This document shows positions 4,660 through 39,049 of a DNA stretch of 64,000 bases, one piece after another (within the stretch, counting starts at the first letter, position 1; every line of letters begins with the position of its first letter). Position numbers and translations under genes: made by a program. Source of the stretch: Auanema rhodensis. Taxonomy: Eukaryota > Animalia > Nematoda. The notes below the pieces were generated by a model that was not told the origin of the DNA, ran no database searches, and saw nothing but the letters and a program-made list of their open reading frames with translations. The stretch spans positions 5,456,001 through 5,520,000 of the forward strand of contig OZ059898.1 of assembly GCA_964057225.1 (NCBI GenBank), in the 5' to 3' direction.

Positions 4660-7600
4660 CTTTCTTTCTCTCTCTATCTTTTTCTTTCTTTGACTTTTCT
4701 CTTTCTATTTCTCACTAGTTTATCTCCTATACTCTCATTTTTCTTTTATAGTCATCATGCATCCTCAATATCTATCATCTCATTAACATGCTCCTAAATC
4801 GTCACGAACTTCAGATCCGCTTTTCAACTTTTCTCATTCATTCCGCCACCCATTTTATGGCTCCCTCTCTATTCCTTTCTCTCTCTCTTTGATCATATCT
4901 TTTACCGCTCTCATTATTAATTTTTATCCTTTTCCTGTATCTCTCTACTCTCTCATTCCATCGTTCTTTCTTTTATTCTTTTTCTCATTTTTTTACAATA
5001 TGTCAATTTAAAATTTTCTATTCATATCGAAAAAATTTTGAAAAAGTTGACTTTGTATTAAATTCACATAATATTTTCTCAGTCTTGATCAAGTTATCTC
5101 TAATGTTATTTCGCTTTTGGATCAAAGCTTTGATAGTTGCAAGCAGAAACATAAGTTATTTCGATTCAATTTCAAATTTATATATATATATGAATGCATA
5201 TATACATATGTATACATATAACTATATGTAAAATATCATTTTTATCTATAAATTTTCCTATTTCTTCATTCTTTTCTAATGTAAATTGTTTTTTTTTCAT
5301 CACTGAAATTTTTATTTTAAAAAAAGATAATTATTAGAAAAATTGATTGATAGAAACTTTATTTAATACTATTTATGTATATTTATAGATTTATATACTA
5401 TACTATATGTATATACAAATATAAATTCTAGAATAATCTCAATATATGGAGATGAAAAGAGTTATAATTCATTTAAAAAGCTTAAATATATTGTAAATAT
5501 TTGTTCATGTTTATATCATATAGCTAATATGTTTCATAGCATTTTTTTACAATCTTATATAGTATATCTATCATTTGTTCGTTTATTCAATTTCTTTTTT
5601 TTCTTTTTTTTTGGCGATCTATGCACAAGTATTTTCCCATATTAATTTCGGTATTTTCCATATTTATTATATAAATAACAATCTACAATGTTTTTATTTC
5701 ATGCAAATCTATTTAATATCCAAAAAAAGAAAACTATACAAATAGAAAGTTCTTCTCATCATTTTGCTAATTTTTTTTTAAATTCCCAGCAAAACGTTTA
5801 GTTTTGTAAAAAAAATTGAATCAAAAACTTATTTGTTTTGTTGAGTTAAATATTTATAATTTATAGATATTATTCTATCTTTCTTACTCATTTTTTCTGT
5901 TTTTTTAAACCATTCTTCGAATCTATAAATATATTTGAAACAAAACAACTGTATAGTCATATGAAATCAATGAATATGTAGTTCAGCTGCTCAGTTTTTA
6001 TCACATTTTCGGCTTCTTTTCTCGTCTTTCTTCATCATGATCCTTGTTTATATTTGAATCAATCCAACAGAAATTTGAGAAATAGATCAAGACATAAGGA
6101 GAGAGAGAGAGAGAGAAAGCGAAAGGAGGTAGGAACAGAGTAAATGAGTGAAGTGGAATAAGAAGAAAAAGTGAGAATAACGATAAAGAGACGGGGGAAA
6201 ATAGCTTAACAACTCAAAGTAATGACTAAGTATAGGCATATATAAGAATATATATTTATTATTTTTAATTTTATTTATTTATTATAATCATTCATAAACT
6301 TTTAAACATTCTCCTTATTTATATATGTATATCGCTTAATATTATTATATTTTATAAACTTTCTTGTGATTTTTAAAAATATAGTATATATACATATATT
6401 TTTGAATTGTGAAAACGGTGTTTTTCCCTTAATTTTCTTTTTTTTCACATTTTTCTCATTTAAATTTCACTTTTTTCTTTTGAATTTACTGCTCATCATA
6501 TCGTCTTCATATTTTTCTGTGGTGATGATGAATAATTGTAAAGAGGATGAAGATAAACTAGGCAAATTCTAAATAGAGAAGGAAAAGAAGAAGCACATGA
6601 AAAGAGAAAAAAAAAGAGGAAAAGCTGAGAAAAGAAGTTTTTGTGAAGAATCGAGCAAATCAATGTACATAATCAGCTCAGTCTGATACTTATCCGCTGA
6701 GCCATTTTCCCAGTTATTGCTAAAGATGAGACTTGATGTCCTCTCTCAAAATTTTATTTCACTTATCCACAGTTTTCTCTTTTTTTCTTTCTTTTTTTCT
6801 TTTTTCCTTATCTATTTTTAAATAAATATATGTGTTAATAATAATAATAAATTTAAAAACTTTTATAATAAATTAATTTATTATATATTTAAAGTTTTAT
6901 CTGATAAATTATATAAAAATAATTATATTAAACTGTTATCATACAACATACATACATGTGTATGTATATGTGTATATGATACACAGTTCATTGTTTATAA
7001 TATTTTTTATAATTAAGAATATTCATTTGAAATATTAATATCATTAACTTAAAATATTTTATTATATTATTTTCTTGTTAACTGTTTTTTTCGATAATAG
7101 GCTATATGATTGAAGTGTTATGTTCCATATTTTATTCTCATCATCCCAAAAACTGCAAAATATGGATAAAAAGGTTGATACAATGCAATAGCCGAAGCAG
7201 CATTAAGCTGCAAAAAAAAGCTTGAATAACGAATTCAATTAAGTTTCAAAAGTTTTCATTAATTACCTCTAGGATCATTGACCTAATACATACATACATA
7301 TACTTCATTTTTTATTTGAAAAATGGTGCAAAGATTAATCTGAAATCGAAAAAATATTTTTTTTTTATGAAAATTGTGACTTTTTTTTTAATAAAAGTAC
7401 ATTGATTCATTAATGAGTATACATATTTTGTTTTTTTTATATTTTAATTTTAAAAAATATAATAAATAAATAATATTTGAATTGAAATAAAACGTATATA
7501 TGTATATACTGAATGTACTTACTAATTTGTGATTTTATGTGTGATTGTATATATACATCCCAATATTCCCAAAAGACTCAATTTAGAATGAAAATGTCTT

Positions 7601-10392
7601 TCAATTTCCTTTATCCTATTGCTCTTTCATGTCCAGTTTAACTTGATTTTTCATAATTCTCAACCAACCATTATCATCATCATCATCTTTTTCATTTTTG
7701 ATGTCAAGTCTATGAGATGAAGTCAAATATTGAACGAAACAATAAGAAGAAAAGATATTTCATGTATATAGTTTTCGTTATTTTAATTGAAAATAATTAT
7801 TTATTTTTATTTTATAATTACAATTATCTCATTTTTCTTCTTAATAATTGATTCAAGGATGTATGTACATTTTAATTTCTTTCTAAAATTATAATTAAAC
7901 TTATACATAATACATATATATATAGCATAGTATATTAAATATATACTATATGTACTTTATCTTAACTATATGTATATTTTATATTTTTTTAAACATATTT
8001 ATACTAATTATAGTAAATTTTCTTATCATGAAGATGATTAAGTAAAAAGTTATTTTTTGAACAAAAAAAAAATCTGTTTTTTCCGTTCATTGAACAGAGA
8101 ACAGAGAATATATAAATATATACATAATATATAATATAAGTGTCTGTTAATATTCTTGAAGTTTCAATTTCACTACATACATATCTGTATATTAAACCTT
8201 AAAAAGCTTCATGTTGATACTGAATACAAGAGCTTCTAATCTGATTAGCATTTTTGGTAAACATAAACGTGTAGGAACTAAATCAATTCAATATAATTAT
8301 TTATGTGTTGGGAACTATTCAATTTTTACTTCCCTTTTCTAATCCAAAGTTTCCTTTCCTTCTCATTTTTTTTGTTTTTTTTTCTTTTCTCTCTTCTTTA
8401 CCAACTATTGAATACTTTTTGTTTTAAATCTATAACATTTAATAGTTAGAAATGATTAAAGAGCGCAAATATTCAAATCTTAAATGTTGAATTCTGAGAG
8501 ACCAAGCTCATTCACAACTTAATTGATTTTTCCATATATAGCTATTGTCATCAAACCGATTTTCTTCTTTTTCTTCTTCTTTCCTATATTAATCTATCAT
8601 ATTTATTATAGATTATTTCAAAAACAATGAATCAAAACACCCAAAATATGGATAAAGTTTTGTTTCCAAAAAAAAAAAAAAACTTAATAGTACTATTATT
8701 AGAAAATGATTTTTATTTTTTTTCCTTTGAATATACCGTAATATATGTGAACATTTTATAAAAAAATAGATTATTTTCGGATTTTAATTGCTCTTCTTGA
8801 GAACTATTAGTGATCTTTCTCATCAATTACAAATTTTATTTTCAAATATAGGTATGACGAATAATACTAAGCAAAAAAATTCTTTTTGCATAGTCAACAA
8901 GGTTGTTACAATGAATATTTAATGAAATGATTCAAAATGAAACATTGATTTTATTTTTTTTTAATTTTTGCATCAAATTAACACGCATGGTTATATATAA
9001 AATATTAAAATTTGTATATTATTTCATATCAATAAACTGTTTGATCTAAAAACTTTTTTTTAATAAAAAAAAAAGTTTGTGAACATTTACTTTATCTATT
9101 CTTCTTTTTCTTTTCTTTTTCTTAAACTTTGCTCACTAGAATAATCAATGAACATTGTTTTTCTTTATTTTGTTTTCTTTTCAAAATACTTCACGTCATG
9201 TCTTGAGCTTATGATCTATTCAAAAGGCTAACTATTACTGAACGTAATACTATACCTAATTCATGTTATAAATATATTTTTGTCACAAAAAAGTTTACGA
9301 AAAACTATATTGTTCCAGAAACATTTGCATCCTCTTTCAAGATATTTTTCTATACTTAAAGTTCACAACATTGTTTGTTAATTTAAAAATAAATTATATT
9401 ATTTATATCTAACTATATAGCTCTTTCATGTATATTTGAATCAAGTTGTCTTTTGTTCATCCATTTTTTTTTATTTTTCATTCACATATTAAGTTTTTCT
9501 GATATAAATATGAATGAATTATATTTTTTCTTTTCTTGATATCTTCTTTTTTCTGGAATTTATAAAGACCTTGAGTACTTTTAAAAGATTATACTAAAGC
9601 TGAACTTTGAAAAATAAAGTTTTTGCATTAAAATCAATTGCAAACTTCCCGTTATATATTCTCTCTCTATATATAATCTCTCACAAGTAGATAAATCCAA
9701 TTGGTTTACTGAATGAAATAGTTAGAACATCTATGTTTTATACGCAATATTCATACAAATTCTTTTTTTTTCTTTTTTTTCCAATTTATCTATATTTATT
9801 TTAAATTTTATTTTTAATTTATGAATTATATAACATACAAATGAGTTTTTTATGTAATTCTTAGTATCTATTTTCAATTGCAGTAAACACGAAAACATTT
9901 TATTTAGTTCAAAACTTAAGGCTTCTTCTATTTTGTTCCTTCTGTCTCATTGTGTCGTACAAAATTAATGATTGGTTATACTTAATTCAAGCTTAATAAG
10001 CTGTTTTTAAGTTCCCTCTTACCATGTGGTCACTTTTTCTTCTTCTTTTTGTATTCAAACTTATATATTTTTCCAATTGATAATTCATAGTTATTCAAGA
10101 CTATGTTTATTCCATTCGTTTTTCTATATTTCTGATCTCTACCGTTACCATAACTTAGTAGTTCTTTAGTTTTTTTTTCTTACAGCTTAACTAAACTATG
10201 TATAGTTAAGTTAAAACATTAATTTATTTTTATATAAAGTTTATTAATATATTCTTGGAATAAAATATTAAGAATTATATAATCATTTCAATATATTAGA
10301 ATATATGAAACTTAATTTTACTTTGTTCCGTTTTATAAATTATTTCATTTTCAAATATTTCCTTTACTATTAGTTCTTTTATTAGCTTCAAA

Positions 10393-31477: not shown

Positions 31478-34400
31478 ATGCAGGCTCCTCTCTACCCTTC
31501 ACTAAACAGCTTACAAGGCCAGTTGGGGGGATCATTAACAAGTTCTGGAAGATATTCTCCGAACTCTTATAAGAACCGTATGCAACCGGTAAGTCATAAA
31601 CTTTTAAGCTATTAATTATTTTTATTTATATATTAATAACAATCTCTACTATTTTATTATAATTTTTACATATTTATATAGTTTATTTATGAATCAGAGT
31701 ATAATTCTATTATTCAATCATCATTTATCACACCTATTTTTTCTTATTTTATATATCATTTCTGATGATCTTGTCCACGCTGGTAATATATTCTATGGCT
31801 GACTGGGCATAAATTAAAGTCTTATTAAGAATTTATGAAATTTGCAATAGCTTCCTCACAGTTGCATCTCTCATCAGTGTCCCAATAAGGTTCATTTCAT
31901 TAGAACATATTTCACGTATCTTTCATATATTTTACCTGAATTCTTTTGTTATCGTCATCATATTTATATTTTTTTGAATTTTTTCCTTAAAAATCGTAAA
32001 GCACTAAAAGCATATATATAGTATATAGTTAACGAATTGCATACAAAAATAATTATTTCATAAACTATTCTCTATTCTATAACTTATTTCCTTGTTAGTC
32101 ATATTTTCTGACGAATAATTTGAAATAGTTTAACATTGAGATTATTAAGTCTGTGCTATTACTCTCTGATCGTTGAACAATTTTTTTTGTTTGAAATTAT
32201 ATGAATGACTTGTCTCAGCGTCCTTCTACATCACACAGTGATGAAGAAAGCCTGAAGACACTACTTTGAACTTCTGAATACACTGGATAACATTCACGTG
32301 GTCAGCACTTGTGGTTATGTACAAGTCGATGAAAAATTAATTTCGAGGCGCCTCAATGAGAGCCTAGTTGTCAATTTATTCATAGTTGTAAGCACTACCT
32401 ATGTTTGTTATGACTAAAACTTGAAGCTTCAAATGTTTTAACATACATTAGTGTGAAGTTTGAAGCTGATTAAGTTTGTCATCCTCTCAATTTATATTGT
32501 AAACCAATGTAATAGGATAGAGAGATCATTTCTCGATTTCTATATACATAAATGTATTTGATTGTCCACAGTTTCCAAGAAATTTTCCTCTACCCACCAT
32601 CCATCGTATGCTTCCTACCTCACCTTTCACAATTTTCAACTTTTCTGGTTCATTGAATGAAAATTCTTCTTTTACCTGACAAAATTGGCTCGAAAAAGCT
32701 GACTTGTTGTTGTCACAATACTTTTTCCTTTTAAGCTCAATTTTCCACTTGTTTGAGCTTTTTTCACCTACTATCTACAGCTACATCCACATAATTTTCC
32801 AATAACGACTGGGATCCAACATAGTGAAAATATGAAATTTTTCAAGCAAAAAGAGAACTTACCTGACGAGAGGCAATAGTAAAAGGGAGATACCAATCTG
32901 TAAAACAATTGCAAAAATAATTTTTTTTACTAGAAATCGTAGCAAAAAATATTATTTTTATGTGTTCAAAAGTTCATATCATGAATTTGCGGTGTTTCCT
33001 GAAAATAGGGCTGGTATAGTATTAGTAAATCATATATATCTTATTTTCTATAGTTATAACACTTGTTACAAACACTGATTATACCAATTTGCTTCGATCT
33101 ATATCCTGCTTTCAGCGGCAGGTGCTTTTTCAATAATGTTTCCAATATATTTCTAATTAATAACAGCTTTTTCATGTCGTGTTCAATCTGCTTCGTGAGC
33201 AGAAATCGTTTGTCAACTACTGACAGCAGATGAATCATTCTCATGTCTCTTACCACAGATGGAATCTGACCATGTTATCATAGACATAAAAGATATAAAA
33301 ATATAACTTTTACTTGCAAATTGCTTATTACTGTGAACAAAAAGGAGGTTAGGAAACATGGAACAACGACATCTTTAACATGTGTCATGTCTTTCGTTCC
33401 TTTTTCTCTTGTACAACTAACTTTTCAATTTTTTTCTTTCATTCTTAAAATGAAAAGTCAAATATGAATACTACTGTTTGTCTAAAAGTTATTTTTGCTT
33501 TTTACAAACGATTTTAAATAAAAAAATAGAGAATGAAGACGATATTAGCCTTTTTGATCATTTGTCATGTCTTTTCTAGTATTTTAGCATTCTTTTCATT
33601 ACCTTACCTTCCACTATTTTTTTAAAATTCAACTTTTCTTTTACTTTCATAAACTCCTTTTTACTCTGCTTGTCTAGCTCATTTTCACTTTTTTCTAGGC
33701 TTCATTTCTTTTCGAGCTTCCTCTCTATGGCTTTTTTCTACTACGGTATACATTCTCAGGAGCTGAACGAGACACGACTTTCGGTTTTCTAAGTAATCAT
33801 CGTGCTCCCTATTCCTTTTCTTACTCTTCTAGCTCTTTCATCTTCCACGTTCTTCAAATGTCTCTTTCATCTTCTTTTTACATTATATGAAACCCGTCCT
33901 TTCGAACTAACTTTCACATCGCCTCAATCACATCCCCTCCTCTAAGAAATTCTTCTTCATTTCTTTTTCATGGCTTGAAAACTCCCAAAATCTAAAATAT
34001 ATCAGGGAAGATGCAATGATTTTCTTGTCGTTCTTAGATATGATAGCAATTTTAGCTGTTTAGCTTCCAGAACCTAGTCTTAAAAGCAAAAAATCTTTCG
34101 TATTCCTAGTTTCGTGCAAATCTTCAGAATTGCTTGAATATAGGGCAAAGATGAAGAAGGTAGCATGACGTGATGACACGAAAAGATCCGTCGCAGATTG
34201 TTGGCTGCCAGGGGCAACGTTTGCCATCCTAAAGATCGACGACGACAGACGAGCGATGAAGTATCGTCGTGTCATCGGCTAAAAGCAAGAGGGCAGTCCA
34301 CTATTTGTTCTGCTCCATGAAAAATTAATTTCTCGTAAATGGCTAAATAGAAAACAGACTCAAGCAATGAGCAGCCACAGAAGCAATAGAAGCTGGCAAC

Positions 34401-37237
34401 AAACCCCACCCATAAGACCACTGCAGCAGCAGCAGCAGCAAAGCTGCAGCAACAACAAGCAGAAGCAGAGCAAGTCATCAGATGCAAGCTTTGGTGTGAA
34501 AAACTTTGTCGTCCTTGACAAAAGTGAGGATGAACATGTCATCTTAGCAGAGAACTGACAAGATGAAAACGATCATCAAATGCAAAATGAGAATGTTTAT
34601 ATACAGTGTTGAAACTTAACAACATTGACAGACGGACACTTTAATTAATAGCTTTCTTTAATTATTTAGGTATACTAATAATTAATTAAGTTATTCTAAG
34701 ATACAACTGAACTTCATAACAAAATCACTCATCATTAAGTTCATTTTTCTTACAATGTAGATAAATTATTGTAAATTTTAAATAAGAAACAAATAGTTGA
34801 GATAGTTAAAACCTTATATATATATATATATATATATATTATTTTTAATTCATACTATATAAAGATTTTTATTTCAGTTTAACAACTCTTTATTCGGGTC
34901 GTTTGACGATTCCTTATTTCAAGCTCGAGCAGCTCAAGCGGCAGCTCTAGCTGATATCGATGTCAAAAATGTGAATCTGACCAATCAGCTAATGAGGCCA
35001 CAAGATATGTTTAGGTATAATTCAACTTTTAATTAATATATTCATTTGTATATAACATTATGTATTATTTATTTCATTTTCAGTAATTACCTCATGTCGT
35101 CTGGACAAGACACAACGAATATTTACCAAGGCCTTCCTACTTCATCAGAACCGTTCGATGCTTCTACACTTATTCCAACTAGTAATGCAACTGAGCAAGC
35201 TAGTCATGAAAGTATGACTCCGCTTCAACAGGTTAGTTAAACTTTTATTTTCGTGCAACTGTATAAATTCATCTTTAAGGTTATGGCGATGCAGAACTAC
35301 GGTGCTCCTTCTCATTTCACCCAATACCCAATGGCTCCCTCCTTTGCTGTATCAGCTCCTTCTCAAGTTCGATATCCTTTATCAGCTCCTTCCACCGGTT
35401 CCAATTTAGGTAAGTAGTAATTGTAATTTGTTTTTATTATGTTTTTTTAGAAATTGATACGGATCCTAGAGAATTGGAACGATTTGCGGAACATTTTAAG
35501 CAGCGACGAATCAAACTAGGAGTTACACAGGTATATTCTAGCTACAACCCAGAGTAACTCTAAGTTTCGTATTTTTTAGGCCGATGTAGGAAAAGCCTTA
35601 GCTCATCTTAAAATGCCTGGTGTTGGATCATTATCTCAATCAACCATCTGCCGTTTCGAATCCCTGACACTATCACATAATAACATGGTAGCATTGAAAC
35701 CTATACTTCATTCATGGCTTGAAAAAGTAAATTTTTGGAAACAATTCTTTTATGTTTTCATGGTGTTCGTTGTACATATGATATTTTCAGGCTGAAGAGG
35801 CCATGAAACAGAAGGATACATGTGGTGATGTATCAGGGATACTGCCTAACACTGACAAGAAACGAAAACGAACTAGTATAGCAGCCCCTGAGAAACGACT
35901 TCTAGAAGATTATTTCAGGTAAAACATATACTTATATGATTTCTTAGAAATAAATAAGTAATAACTAATTGAATTATTGAATAAATTTAATTTAGGCAAC
36001 AGCCACGACCATCAGGAGAACGTATAGCTCAAATAGCTGAGAAATTGGATCTTAAAAAAAATGTTGTTCGTGTGTGGTTTTGTAATCAACGACAAAAACA
36101 AAAAAGGTGAATACTATTAATTTAATTTAGAAATCTTAAATTAAAATTACTTATATTGATATTAGAATATATTTTTGATAATCTGAAATGAAAGCAGCAT
36201 ACAAGTCTTCCATGTTAAGCTCTTCATACAAAACTTCAAATCTGAAATCTTGAAACAAATTTGCTAGAAAAATAATTATTTTATAATTATATAAATAATA
36301 TATAAACATTAGATCGTATTAGCATTTTTTAAATTTGTTTTATAATTCTAACTACACTATACTAATTATTATTTAAAGAAGTACATATGTATATTACAAT
36401 TATGATATTATCTTTCTTTCTTTTTTTTTAAACTATTCAATAATAAGACATTAATTTTATATTTATTACATGTATATAATTTATTAGATTCATGTATATC
36501 ATTAGTTATGAAAAACAGCCTTTTTTTGGAAACATAGCCCAAAACAATTCACTTTGAACTTTTCTTTTTTTGAAAAATTTCTAATTAAAATTGATTGAAA
36601 CTGACTAGAATGTCTTGTATGCTGCTTTTATTCTAAAACTATTTTAATTTTGTTTAAACACTCAAATTGGTCTTTGAATAAGGATCACAAATTCTCATAT
36701 TTCGGTTTTTGAGTATGCTAATACTTGCCTTATTTGTAGTTCTTGTCGCTCCGGACCAGCTTACAATAATAATATCACTATCAGTAATAATAATAATACA
36801 ACTAATAATAATAATAATAATGCCGTCAATTCCGTCTATGACCGCATTGATACGAGCACCAGCAGCATTTGGCGTGAGCGACAAGATCTGCAGAAGGTGA
36901 GCCAAACATCCGTGTCTCGTTAATCTATATGTGTTGTGTATTCTATACCTTTTTTTCATTTTCTTTTCATTTTTTACGATATTCAAATTCATTCGTACTT
37001 CTACTTCTATTCTTTTCTGTATCATTTCCAGCTAAAAACTAACTGATTCGTATAGATCAAATGAAACTATTCATTGGTCTTTAGTATATTTGACATGGAA
37101 ACATTCATTTTAATTTCAGAGACTTCCGTTCACAGTTCCGCTCTCGTAATGGCACAAATGGTACAGCAGCTCCACGATTGATGCCAGCCAATACCAAATG
37201 TGCTCCATTTCCCGGCCTACCCGGCTACTTTGAGTAG
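31478..37237 (+). CDS. unc-86: POU class IV homeodomain transcription factor (Brn3/POU4F/acj6 orthologue)
   Basis: Exons 31478-31588, 34878-35014, 35084-35231, 35280-35409, 35451-35530, 35580-35726, 35791-35918, 35996-36106, 37120-37237. Contains the POU-IV box region ([23 protein letters not shown]), POU-specific domain ([59 protein letters not shown]), homeodomain ([14 protein letters not shown]...[15 protein letters not shown]) and tail DFRSQFR...GLPGYFE*. Start codon uncertain. Confidence 0.97.
34423..34470. repeat. (CAG)n / CAR-rich repeat in unc-86 intron 1
   Basis: gcagcagcagcagcagca followed by degenerate gca/aca units. Confidence 0.85.
36740..36896 (+). CDS. unc-86: Putative alternative cassette exon of unc-86 encoding an Asn-rich C-terminal segment
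   Basis: TGCTAAT branch-like motif, TTTGTAG acceptor (36733-36739) and AAG|GTGAGC donor. 52 stop-free codons in the frame delivered by the homeodomain exon. Confidence 0.65.
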
Positions 37238-39049
37238 CAAATGTGAAGATGTCATTTGAATATGTTTGATAACGACGACAACAGAAGTTCAAAATGCGAA
37301 CAGGTCAACTTGGTTCGTCTTTTTCTAGATCCAAACGATTAGTTCACCGTTTTGTTTTTGATATCTTTGTGTAAAATCTTGTATAATTATATCTATATAT
37401 TTATATTATATAATTAAGTTAATATAATATTTATATATATGTGTTTTGTCCATTAATGCTCAGGTTTTTTTGAATATTAATATACATATATATACATTTA
37501 TATATATAATATATATTTTTATATATTATATACATATATATTTATTTATTAATAATCATGCATGTTCAAGAAAATGTCTAGATCATGTATGTTTATGTAT
37601 CTATCTCTCTCTCTATCTCCTTCTCTCTCTCCCTCTCTCTATGTGTGTGTAAGTATGTGTGTGTTATTTCAACTCTTTTAATGATAATCTCAACCTGTTT
37701 CTCATAAAATATACAATTATTCTTGCAATTTGGAGGGCTATATGATCTCATGGCATTTGACCAGAACTCTTCTTATTCACATTCCTGGTCTTCTATTTCC
37801 TTCTCTGTATTTTAAATGATTTTTTACAATTATTAGAATTTATATATTGATAAGTATATGTTATCTGATAGCAATACAAATCCCAACCCAACTCCCCAAC
37901 CAGCACCAAATTTCTCATTTATTGCCTATACCATCATCATTCTTTCAATTTGTAGATCAAGTACTTAAAGTTTTACTCATTCAATGATCCTTTCGGTACC
38001 TAATACGCCTTGGTATGACGCCATTCTCTGTAATTCACTTCAAACATTGTAGTTTAAATCCATATAAATGCTACCGGAATGTATAGTTTAATCAAAAAAT
38101 TATATAGATTTCAATCTTTCCTATTCTTCTCTTTATCCATATTTTTTCTTTTTTTCTTCTGTTTTTACTTCTTTTCTTCCCCCTCCCCTCATCGTCCTTA
38201 CACAGGGTATTTGTTTGTGCAAAATGGTTTTTGTTGTTTCCTTAAGTCCGAATTCAAGATCTATTATTAATATATGACATTATTGTGACAATGAATTCTA
38301 TATATCTATGCACATAGTTGAACAAAAAAAAATATATCAAGTAAGATAGATAGATGCAAAGTAGGGAAATTAAAAAGAAACAAAGATAAATATTTAAAAA
38401 AGACAATATTGAAAAAAGTTATGTTGGGATAAATGAAAAACGATATAATCACCATCTTGCAACAAGGATTTTGCGATCTGAACTAGAAAGGTAAACTTAT
38501 GATACGGTTAAATGGACATGTGATAACTCTGATTGAGCTTCGTGAGCACATAGGTAAGACATGCAATACAGTAGACAGACGGCATGAGATCGATCTCACT
38601 GACAGCCAAGACGGCGACACTACCGATGACAGCAAAGATGATGATGATGTTGAAGCTGCTACGTTCATTCAAGTGACAGAGAGTAGCAGTTAGAATGGCT
38701 GTAAGTCGAGAAGATTGTGTTGATTTCAGGAGACGCAGACTAGCACGAATCAATGTGGCTGCTTTCCTGACAGAGAGCTCAGACGGGAAAGGCTGAGGGA
38801 AGGAGATGGAGCACGAGCTCCATGAATGATTCAGTAGTTGTAGCCATACGGAGGAAGGACGAGTAAAGAGGGTTTAGAGAAATAGGGGACATATTCAGCA
38901 GTGAATGTAGACAAAGAAAAGAAGAGAACAGTAGAGAGAAAAGATAGAGAGAAAAGTGAAATTGTTCAAAGGTGAAGAGAAATTTCACAATGCCGACTAC
39001 CTTTGCATATTTGTGAATTCTACTAATACCCAATAATACAAGTCACATC

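Follow-up and report, generated by a model that had tools for sequence, protein, structure and literature searches.

UNC-86/POU4 is a master regulator of neuron identity. The unc-86 gene of the nematode Auanema rhodensis lies on a stretch of 64,000 nucleotides (nt; 64 kb) of contig OZ059898.1 (positions 5,456,001 to 5,520,000), hereafter the window, and it raises the question of whether this regulator ends in one C-terminal tail or in a choice of two. An earlier reading of the window (the original prediction) had proposed a cassette exon hidden in the last intron of the gene. Its inclusion would exchange the C-terminus and would yield either a neuronally spliced isoform or an exon coupled to nonsense-mediated mRNA decay (NMD). 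We rebuilt the gene model from the window sequence and compared it with the unc-86 locus of a second Auanema species. At the level of sequence, the existence of an unannotated exon in the last unc-86 intron that would swap the C-terminus is strongly supported. What is new beyond the original prediction is a helix between the acceptor and the donor of this exon. As far as could be found, no UNC-86 isoform with a replaced C-terminal tail has been described in the literature. Unless another locus or strand is named, coordinates are window positions on the plus strand.

Results

A candidate cassette exon in the last intron of unc-86

Eight coding exons between 34878 and 37237 join into a single open frame with the C-terminus ...GLPGYFE followed by a stop. 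The POU-specific domain and the homeodomain are encoded in this spliced frame, and the seven constitutive exons upstream of the last intron span 34878-36106. The internal introns in that span measure 69, 48, 41, 49, 64 and 77 nt, whereas the last intron is 1013 nt long, which reproduces the contrast in length described originally. Exon G (35996-36106) precedes the long intron and ends in ...QRQKQK plus the nucleotides AG.

The stop-free segment of 157 nt reported within this intron was recovered as well, with TTTGTAG directly before it and the donor AAG/GTGAGC at its end. In the phase dictated by exon G, the 52 codons of the segment from 36741 onwards contain no stop. Eight unique codons come first, then an Asn/Ser/Thr tract based on AAT (36765-36821) and finally 25 further unique codons (36822-36896). 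If the donor is read through, VSQTSVSR and then a stop follow. In the rebuilt model, inclusion of the cassette replaces AGA (Arg) by AGT (Ser) at homeodomain position 58 and shifts the last exon to RLPFTVPLS followed by TAA at 37147-37149, so that the DFRSQFR...GLPGYFE tail is lost, just as had been predicted. The segment is also a G+C island, with a G+C fraction of 0.43-0.46 compared to 0.13-0.27 for the remaining intron.

The block is the only conserved part of the intron in Auanema melissensis

UNC-86 proteins of nematodes were found by searching a representative library with the POU-specific exon, and the Mesorhabditis protein P0018 as query then gave orthologues of many nematodes; protein fragments from the first protein search (P0001-P0009), which belong to other species and short contigs, were of no use. 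The closest relative is P0162 of Auanema sp. JU1783, which is 97% identical across the seven constitutive exons. JU1783 is Auanema melissensis (PMC9984802). Its unc-86 locus (L001), on which the exons were mapped, has the same exon structure and a last intron of 1348 nt.

A single block of the last intron could be aligned between the two species (window 36723-36975 with L001 11577-11864; blastn, E value 3e-55). The conserved block starts 17 nt 5′ of the cassette acceptor and fades 9 nt past the donor, the downstream intron flank being alignable for about 80 nt. The cassette of A. melissensis is longer by a 39-nt insertion in the AAT tract. Outside this tract, 38 of 38 nt are identical at 36723-36760 and 88 of 91 at 36815-36905, and both splice sites (TTTGTAG/ and AAG/GTGAGC) are the same in the two species. 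The constitutive exons provide the background: over 881 nt they are 81.7% identical (94.9%, 99.0% and 51.2% at the three codon positions), and in these POU and homeodomain exons no identical run is longer than 17 nt, the best 33-nt window reaches 30/33 and the best 76-nt window 67/76. Against this background, the aligned sequences indicate that the cassette block is under stronger nucleotide-level constraint than the homeodomain itself. Its G+C content and its strong conservation mark the segment as more than a chance feature. The TGCTAAT cited in the original prediction is present in the window but is not conserved in A. melissensis.

In A. melissensis the cassette frame also stays open through the 296-nt downstream piece of the intron, in register with the canonical frame of the last exon, which gives a read-through open reading frame (ORF) of 229 amino acids (aa) with an ATG start (L001:11532-12221). 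Retention of this piece would keep the DFRSQFR...GYFE tail. This read-through is probably due to chance in a T-rich stretch, since in the window the same read-through ends after 8 codons.

Splice sites and origin of the cassette

Splice sites were scored with small position weight matrices (PWMs) built from 16 constitutive acceptors and 14 donors of both Auanema unc-86 genes. Among the GTs of the last intron, that of the cassette donor scores highest in either species (first of 34 in the window and first of 48 in A. melissensis), and its scores of 8.3 and 7.4 fall within the constitutive range. A TTGTAG acceptor like that of the cassette is used constitutively at exon E of A. melissensis.

An origin of the cassette from a repeat or transposon was rejected, the AAT tract being the only part with matches elsewhere in the window. 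Duplication of exon G was rejected too: exon G and the cassette showed no BLASTP match at E ≤ 100, and their alignment as DNA was unconvincing. A local blastp search with the alternative tail returned a match to helix 2-3 of POU homeodomains at E values of 2-5. An Rfam scan of 36000-37300 gave two sub-threshold chance matches alone (U6, E value 0.7; CrcZ, E value 0.3). Four RNA-like sequencing runs contain 0.40-0.41 of 244 sampled words of 34860-37330; the 31-mer share expected from exons alone is about 0.35 and that from exons plus cassette about 0.40, a gap that lies within the sampling error.

The exon G frame is kept open and changes in a coding-like manner

Neither species has a stop in the frame that continues from exon G, which runs over 52 codons in the window and 65 in A. 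melissensis. The first sense frame of the cassette is full of stops, and the third is open in the window and has two stops in A. melissensis. Four substitutions separate the 33 unique codons, three of them synonymous at third positions and one changing Ser to Gly; in the antisense frame three of the four fall at first positions and change the amino acid. Departures from AAT within the tract number 1, 16 and 11 at codon positions one, two and three, and all variant codons encode Ser, Thr, Ile, Met, Leu or, synonymously, Asn, with no Asp, His, Tyr or Lys among them. The substitution counts are small and repeat slippage makes the counts from the AAT tract non-independent, so the support for coding is moderate.

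The start of the last exon is frozen over its predicted two-register part

If the cassette is skipped, the first nucleotides of the last exon are read in the canonical frame; if it is included, they would encode RLPFTVPLS and the TAA stop. All 33 nt of this stretch are identical between the two species, that is, the 30-nt part with two predicted registers plus 3 nt, and divergence starts directly after. Of the independent tests for a coding cassette this is the strongest, and it follows from the original prediction. At a third-position identity of 51%, eleven consecutive unchanged third positions have a probability of about 6e-4. Past nucleotide 33 the last exon shows ordinary coding divergence with synonymous changes, which places the canonical tail under protein-level selection in Auanema. 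The skipped form is then functional too, which suggests that the use of the cassette is alternative and not constitutive.

The acceptor and the donor of the cassette are complementary

When the sequences of both species are folded together, RNAalifold joins the acceptor region to the donor region in a stem of about 31 base pairs (bp), at -47.3 kcal/mol. In this stem 36724-36730 pairs with 36895-36901, covering the donor GU, and 36733-36739 (UUUGUAG, including the acceptor AG) pairs with 36888-36894. They are followed by a perfect inverted repeat of 11 bp between 36741-36751 (TCTTGTCGCTC) and 36876-36886 (GAGCGACAAGA), which also came up in the repeat search, and a few further pairs extend the stem to 36760 and 36865. 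The closing helix is common to the minimum free energy (MFE) and centroid structures of each species folded alone. Folding energies were -49.2 kcal/mol in the window (z -3.41) and -55.5 kcal/mol in A. melissensis (z -3.20), and in neither case was any of 200 shuffles as stable. The duplex between the two arms reaches -41.5 kcal/mol, whereas the lowest value of the 5′ arm with 9086 other windows of the 64 kb was -29.8 kcal/mol.

The part of the stem that covers the splice sites contains four G.U pairs. On the minus strand these become A.C and interrupt the outer helix. One G-C to G-U change, which keeps the pairing, was found in a local hairpin outside the main stem. The stem would explain why both ends of the cassette are frozen at all codon positions. 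A competing helix in which the 3′ arm would pair with the first part of the last exon was rejected (-20.8 kcal/mol, a value reached by 1.2% of windows and not significant).

A CELF/UNC-75-type motif follows the donor

Downstream of the donor the octamer GTGTTGTG named in the original prediction is present. It forms part of TGTGTTGTG, which is exactly conserved about 30 nt past the donor in A. melissensis, in a flank that is otherwise poorly conserved. PMC3627589 defines the C. elegans UNC-75 element as the original prediction had done, and there downstream (G/U)UGUUGUG elements mark UNC-75-activated exons. By inference alone, UNC-75 might regulate the cassette, and we take this only as a lead.

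The cassette is restricted to Auanema

The position of the last unc-86 intron is common to rhabditids, and in C. elegans, Mesorhabditis and Diploscapter the intron is about 45 nt long. The same intron is long in C. auriculariae (about 730 nt, L005 around 9055-9788) and in Haemonchus contortus (about 580 nt, L006 around 5691-6272). In tblastn searches of six unc-86 loci (C. elegans, Mesorhabditis belari, Diploscapter pachys, C. auriculariae, Haemonchus contortus and Pristionchus pacificus) no homologue of the cassette was detected, the only matches being low-complexity noise. The original prediction had proposed aligning the intron across relatives. Splice sites, frame and octamer are kept in A. 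melissensis, but the exon is absent from the six other loci searched. On the evidence available, the cassette is a novelty of Auanema.

In a strongylid-like protein of 166 aa from the representative library (P0016) the POU and homeodomain exons are joined, but either end runs into sequence that was not spliced, and the stop comes two codons past QKQK (...QKQKRY). It looks like the product of a transcript that had kept its last intron, a hint that this intron is slow to be removed in other nematodes too.

Other features of the locus

Positions are collected in Table 1. The first unc-86 intron, between the start-codon exon and 34878, is about 3.3 kb long. Three blocks within it are 84-88% identical to A. 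melissensis (33150-33278, 33726-33807 and 34259-34370) and are likely conserved regulatory or untranslated elements. On the 3′ side of unc-86, blocks at 38142-38340, 38524-38577 and 38799-38952 are conserved at 79-87% in A. melissensis; these may be exons of a neighbouring gene. In L001 the called genes next to unc-86 lie on the minus strand, and one of them has a PH_15 domain. Very A+T-rich TA-repeat sequence at 37380-37550 adjoins CT/TC and TG dinucleotide repeats at 37600-37670, about 370 nt past the unc-86 stop.

Table 1. Coordinates of the unc-86 exons, the candidate cassette and its associated elements in the window
Feature	Position	Strand	Remarks
First coding exon of unc-86	31478-31588	+	86% over 43 aa in tblastn of P0162 residues 1-60 against the window
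Coding exons of unc-86	34878-35014, 35084-35231, 35280-35409, 35451-35530, 35580-35726, 35791-35918, 35996-36106, 37120-37237	+	spliced translation
Last unc-86 intron	36107-37119	+	1013 nt, from the gene model
Stem, 5′ arm	36724-36760	+	pyrimidine tract, acceptor AG (36738-36739) and first 21 cassette nt; RNAalifold, MFE/centroid, inverted repeat I1
Candidate cassette exon	36740-36896	+	157 nt; open in exon G frame; 196 nt in A. melissensis
Stem, 3′ arm	36865-36901	+	last 32 cassette nt and GTGAG of the donor; GT at 36897-36898
Cassette donor GTGAGCCAA	36897-36905	+	identical in both species
TGTGTTGTG, (G/U)UGUUGUG-type CELF/UNC-75 motif	36930-36938	+	35 nt past the donor; octamer GTGTTGTG at 36931-36938
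Predicted two-frame stretch of the last exon	37120-37152	+	first 33 nt, 33/33 identical between species
Last exon, canonical frame	37120-37237	+	stop TAG at 37235-37237

Discussion

Our comparison makes it very likely that the segment is a conserved, frame-preserving exon bounded by its splice sites. Going further, we think it quite probable that 36740-36896 is a real, Auanema-specific coding exon in alternative use in unc-86, whose splice sites are masked by the stem so that skipping is the default. From the conserved sequence and its complementarity we infer three things: the cassette is joined into mRNA in vivo, the stem holds it back, and some factor relieves this repression. By default, the stem would form soon after transcription, since the loop is just 124-163 nt, and would hide the AG and the GU and loop out the body of the cassette. 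Exon G would then join the last exon and give canonical UNC-86 with the tail DFRSQFR...GLPGYFE, as in other rhabditids. Inclusion would require that the stem is opened, prevented or out-competed in particular cells, in which a factor of the CELF/UNC-75 type, bound to the conserved UGUGUUGUG that lies 30-35 nt downstream, might assist. The included protein would carry Ser58, a short unique peptide, the Asn/Ser/Thr-rich tract and then a conserved tail of about 35 residues, with the peptide of 25 residues followed by RLPFTVPLS in the shifted register. Since the stop after inclusion lies in the last exon, no NMD is expected; the mRNA of the included form should be stable, and its protein would end in another tail than canonical UNC-86. 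Of the two outcomes originally offered, the isoform with a swapped C-terminus gains comparative support, whereas the NMD variant is unlikely, given a stop only 30 nt inside the last exon and the conservation of frame and stop.

Several observations weigh against an alternative coding exon. P0162 as annotated is the skipped form, with the canonical tail and no cassette, and a search of a collection of 5.8 billion proteins with the stop-free 229-aa ORF of L001, which carries the cassette peptide, found no protein of 126-400 aa with this conserved peptide. The acceptor is weak (PWM score 2.4-2.6 compared to 5.4-13.7 for constitutive acceptors; rank 5 of 30 in the window and 11 of 54 in A. melissensis), although a weak acceptor together with a masked donor fits an exon skipped by default. 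The 39-nt indel is a multiple of three, which is expected anyhow in an AAT repeat, and KTGTTGTG occurs four times in the window against 3.3 expected, so that of the significance attached to the octamer only its conservation stands and its mere presence does not. The arms of the main stem are invariant between the two species and show no covariation, and at near-total nucleotide identity, coding and RNA-structure constraint are not cleanly separable. Alternatively, the block could be a structured intron element that is conserved yet never used as an exon, either an RNA stem-loop aiding or timing the removal of the long intron or a DNA regulatory element, with frame and splice-like ends as by-products. 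We regard this as unlikely, though it deserves to be taken seriously: protein coding alone would not call for an identity of 96-100% at every codon position, the stem by itself accounts for the conservation of both ends, the pairing of the local hairpin survives a C-to-U change, and the weak acceptor and the lack of a protein with the cassette, P0162 being the skipped form, agree with it. Such an element leaves other features unexplained, however. Conservation extends to the 53 nt that separate the AAT tract from the 3′ arm (36822-36874), which lie mostly outside the main stem; the sense frame that is open in both species is the one matching the phase of the upstream exon, and three of the four unique-codon substitutions are synonymous in it. 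In addition, the 33 unchanged nucleotides of the last exon, ending just past the shifted stop, are predicted by inclusion and not by an intronic element, and the pairing of this exon start with the cassette is not significant.

The cassette might instead be spliced in solely as a regulatory or unproductive event that lowers canonical UNC-86, the peptide having no function of its own. Strongly conserved alternative exons are often regulatory, inclusion deletes a tail conserved across rhabditids, and the new tail is largely of low complexity and without a homologue outside Auanema. With a stop 30 nt into the last exon, however, the usual geometry of a premature stop is absent, the frame is open over 52 and 65 codons, the two species have the same shifted tail of 9 codons with the same stop, and the substitutions follow a coding-like pattern, all of which makes this explanation improbable. 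Transcription from the other strand is more improbable still. The block could in that case be part of an antisense exon or of a small minus-strand ORF (123 aa, 36654-37025), as the exact antisense frame is open across it in both species, possible minus-strand splice sites exist in CTGCAG and a GT, and the folding of the minus strand is of similar stability (z -3.62), so that folding energy is not decisive for the assignment of the strand. Yet the minus-strand ORF is 123 aa with an ATG start in one species and 74 aa with a TTG start in the other, its upstream part is not conserved, and neither is the context of the putative donor. On that strand, three of the four differences within the unique part would alter the encoded residue, and the outer stem is broken up there by the four A.C mismatches at the splice sites. 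A functionless frame, open by chance in a repeat-rich intron, would be easier to come by than it seems, because AAT repeats gain no stops by single changes in two of the three sense frames and because the criteria of the first reading had many degrees of freedom. With the remaining intron unalignable, about half of the synonymous sites changed and the block nevertheless 96-100% identical, and with a stem unmatched by any shuffle or other window, chance is effectively refuted.

Masked or looped-out exons are known from chicken beta-tropomyosin (exon 6B) and hnRNP A1 (exon 7B), and artificial loop-outs are reportedly the work of Solnick. Base pairing that loops out a region reportedly favours its exclusion (PMC10790352), and long-range RNA structures modulate splicing in Drosophila (PMC2724269). 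In the Auanema gene, as in such systems, complementary segments on both sides form a stable helix with the body of the exon in the loop, and skipping is expected unless the helix is opened. In contrast to them, the arms consist of the splice sites and the first or last 21-32 nt of the exon and not of deep flanking intron, and the Auanema exon is a candidate from sequence alone. With arms made in this way, the same nucleotides would serve as splicing signal, helix and codons. The candidate resembles the neuronal exons activated by UNC-75/CELF in C. elegans (PMC3627589, PMC12005262) in carrying (G/U)UGUUGUG 30-35 nt past the donor, the position linked to activation, and in having a neuron-specific host gene. 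It differs in belonging to another species and in having a single element of a motif that is not enriched in the window, and unc-86 is not among the targets named in the available text of these papers.

Like other dual-coding exons, the last exon would be read in two registers over its first 30 nt and shows the loss of synonymous variation expected from this (33/33). Unlike them, it has a very short overlap of 9 codons plus a stop, and its constraint could also reflect splicing signals near the acceptor. Isoform diversity in the POU4 family is familiar from the splice variants of Drosophila acj6 and the long and short forms of vertebrate Brn3. Auanema unc-86 would similarly be a POU-IV terminal selector gene that makes more than one protein by alternative exon use. 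Here, in contrast, the predicted exon lies after the homeodomain and the tail is replaced through a frame shift of the last exon. C. elegans unc-86, with its short intron at this position, has no counterpart of the cassette.

Taken to its full extent, the reading of the segment as an alternative coding exon describes an Auanema exon gated by its own ends, in which one helix between acceptor and donor chooses between two UNC-86 tails and the start of the last exon is read in two registers. We offer this fuller account tentatively and consider it possible but doubtful as a whole. Its significance is limited in that the exon is confined to a non-model genus and that cassette exons, loop-out stems and dual-coding overlaps are each known elsewhere. 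If it is true, a young exon of a single genus would already be under very strong constraint, and three codes, for splice signals, helix and codons, would overlap in the same nucleotides. The RNA logic of the switch would then be readable from the sequence. If, moreover, inclusion is limited to some classes of neurons, a single terminal selector would act as two factors.

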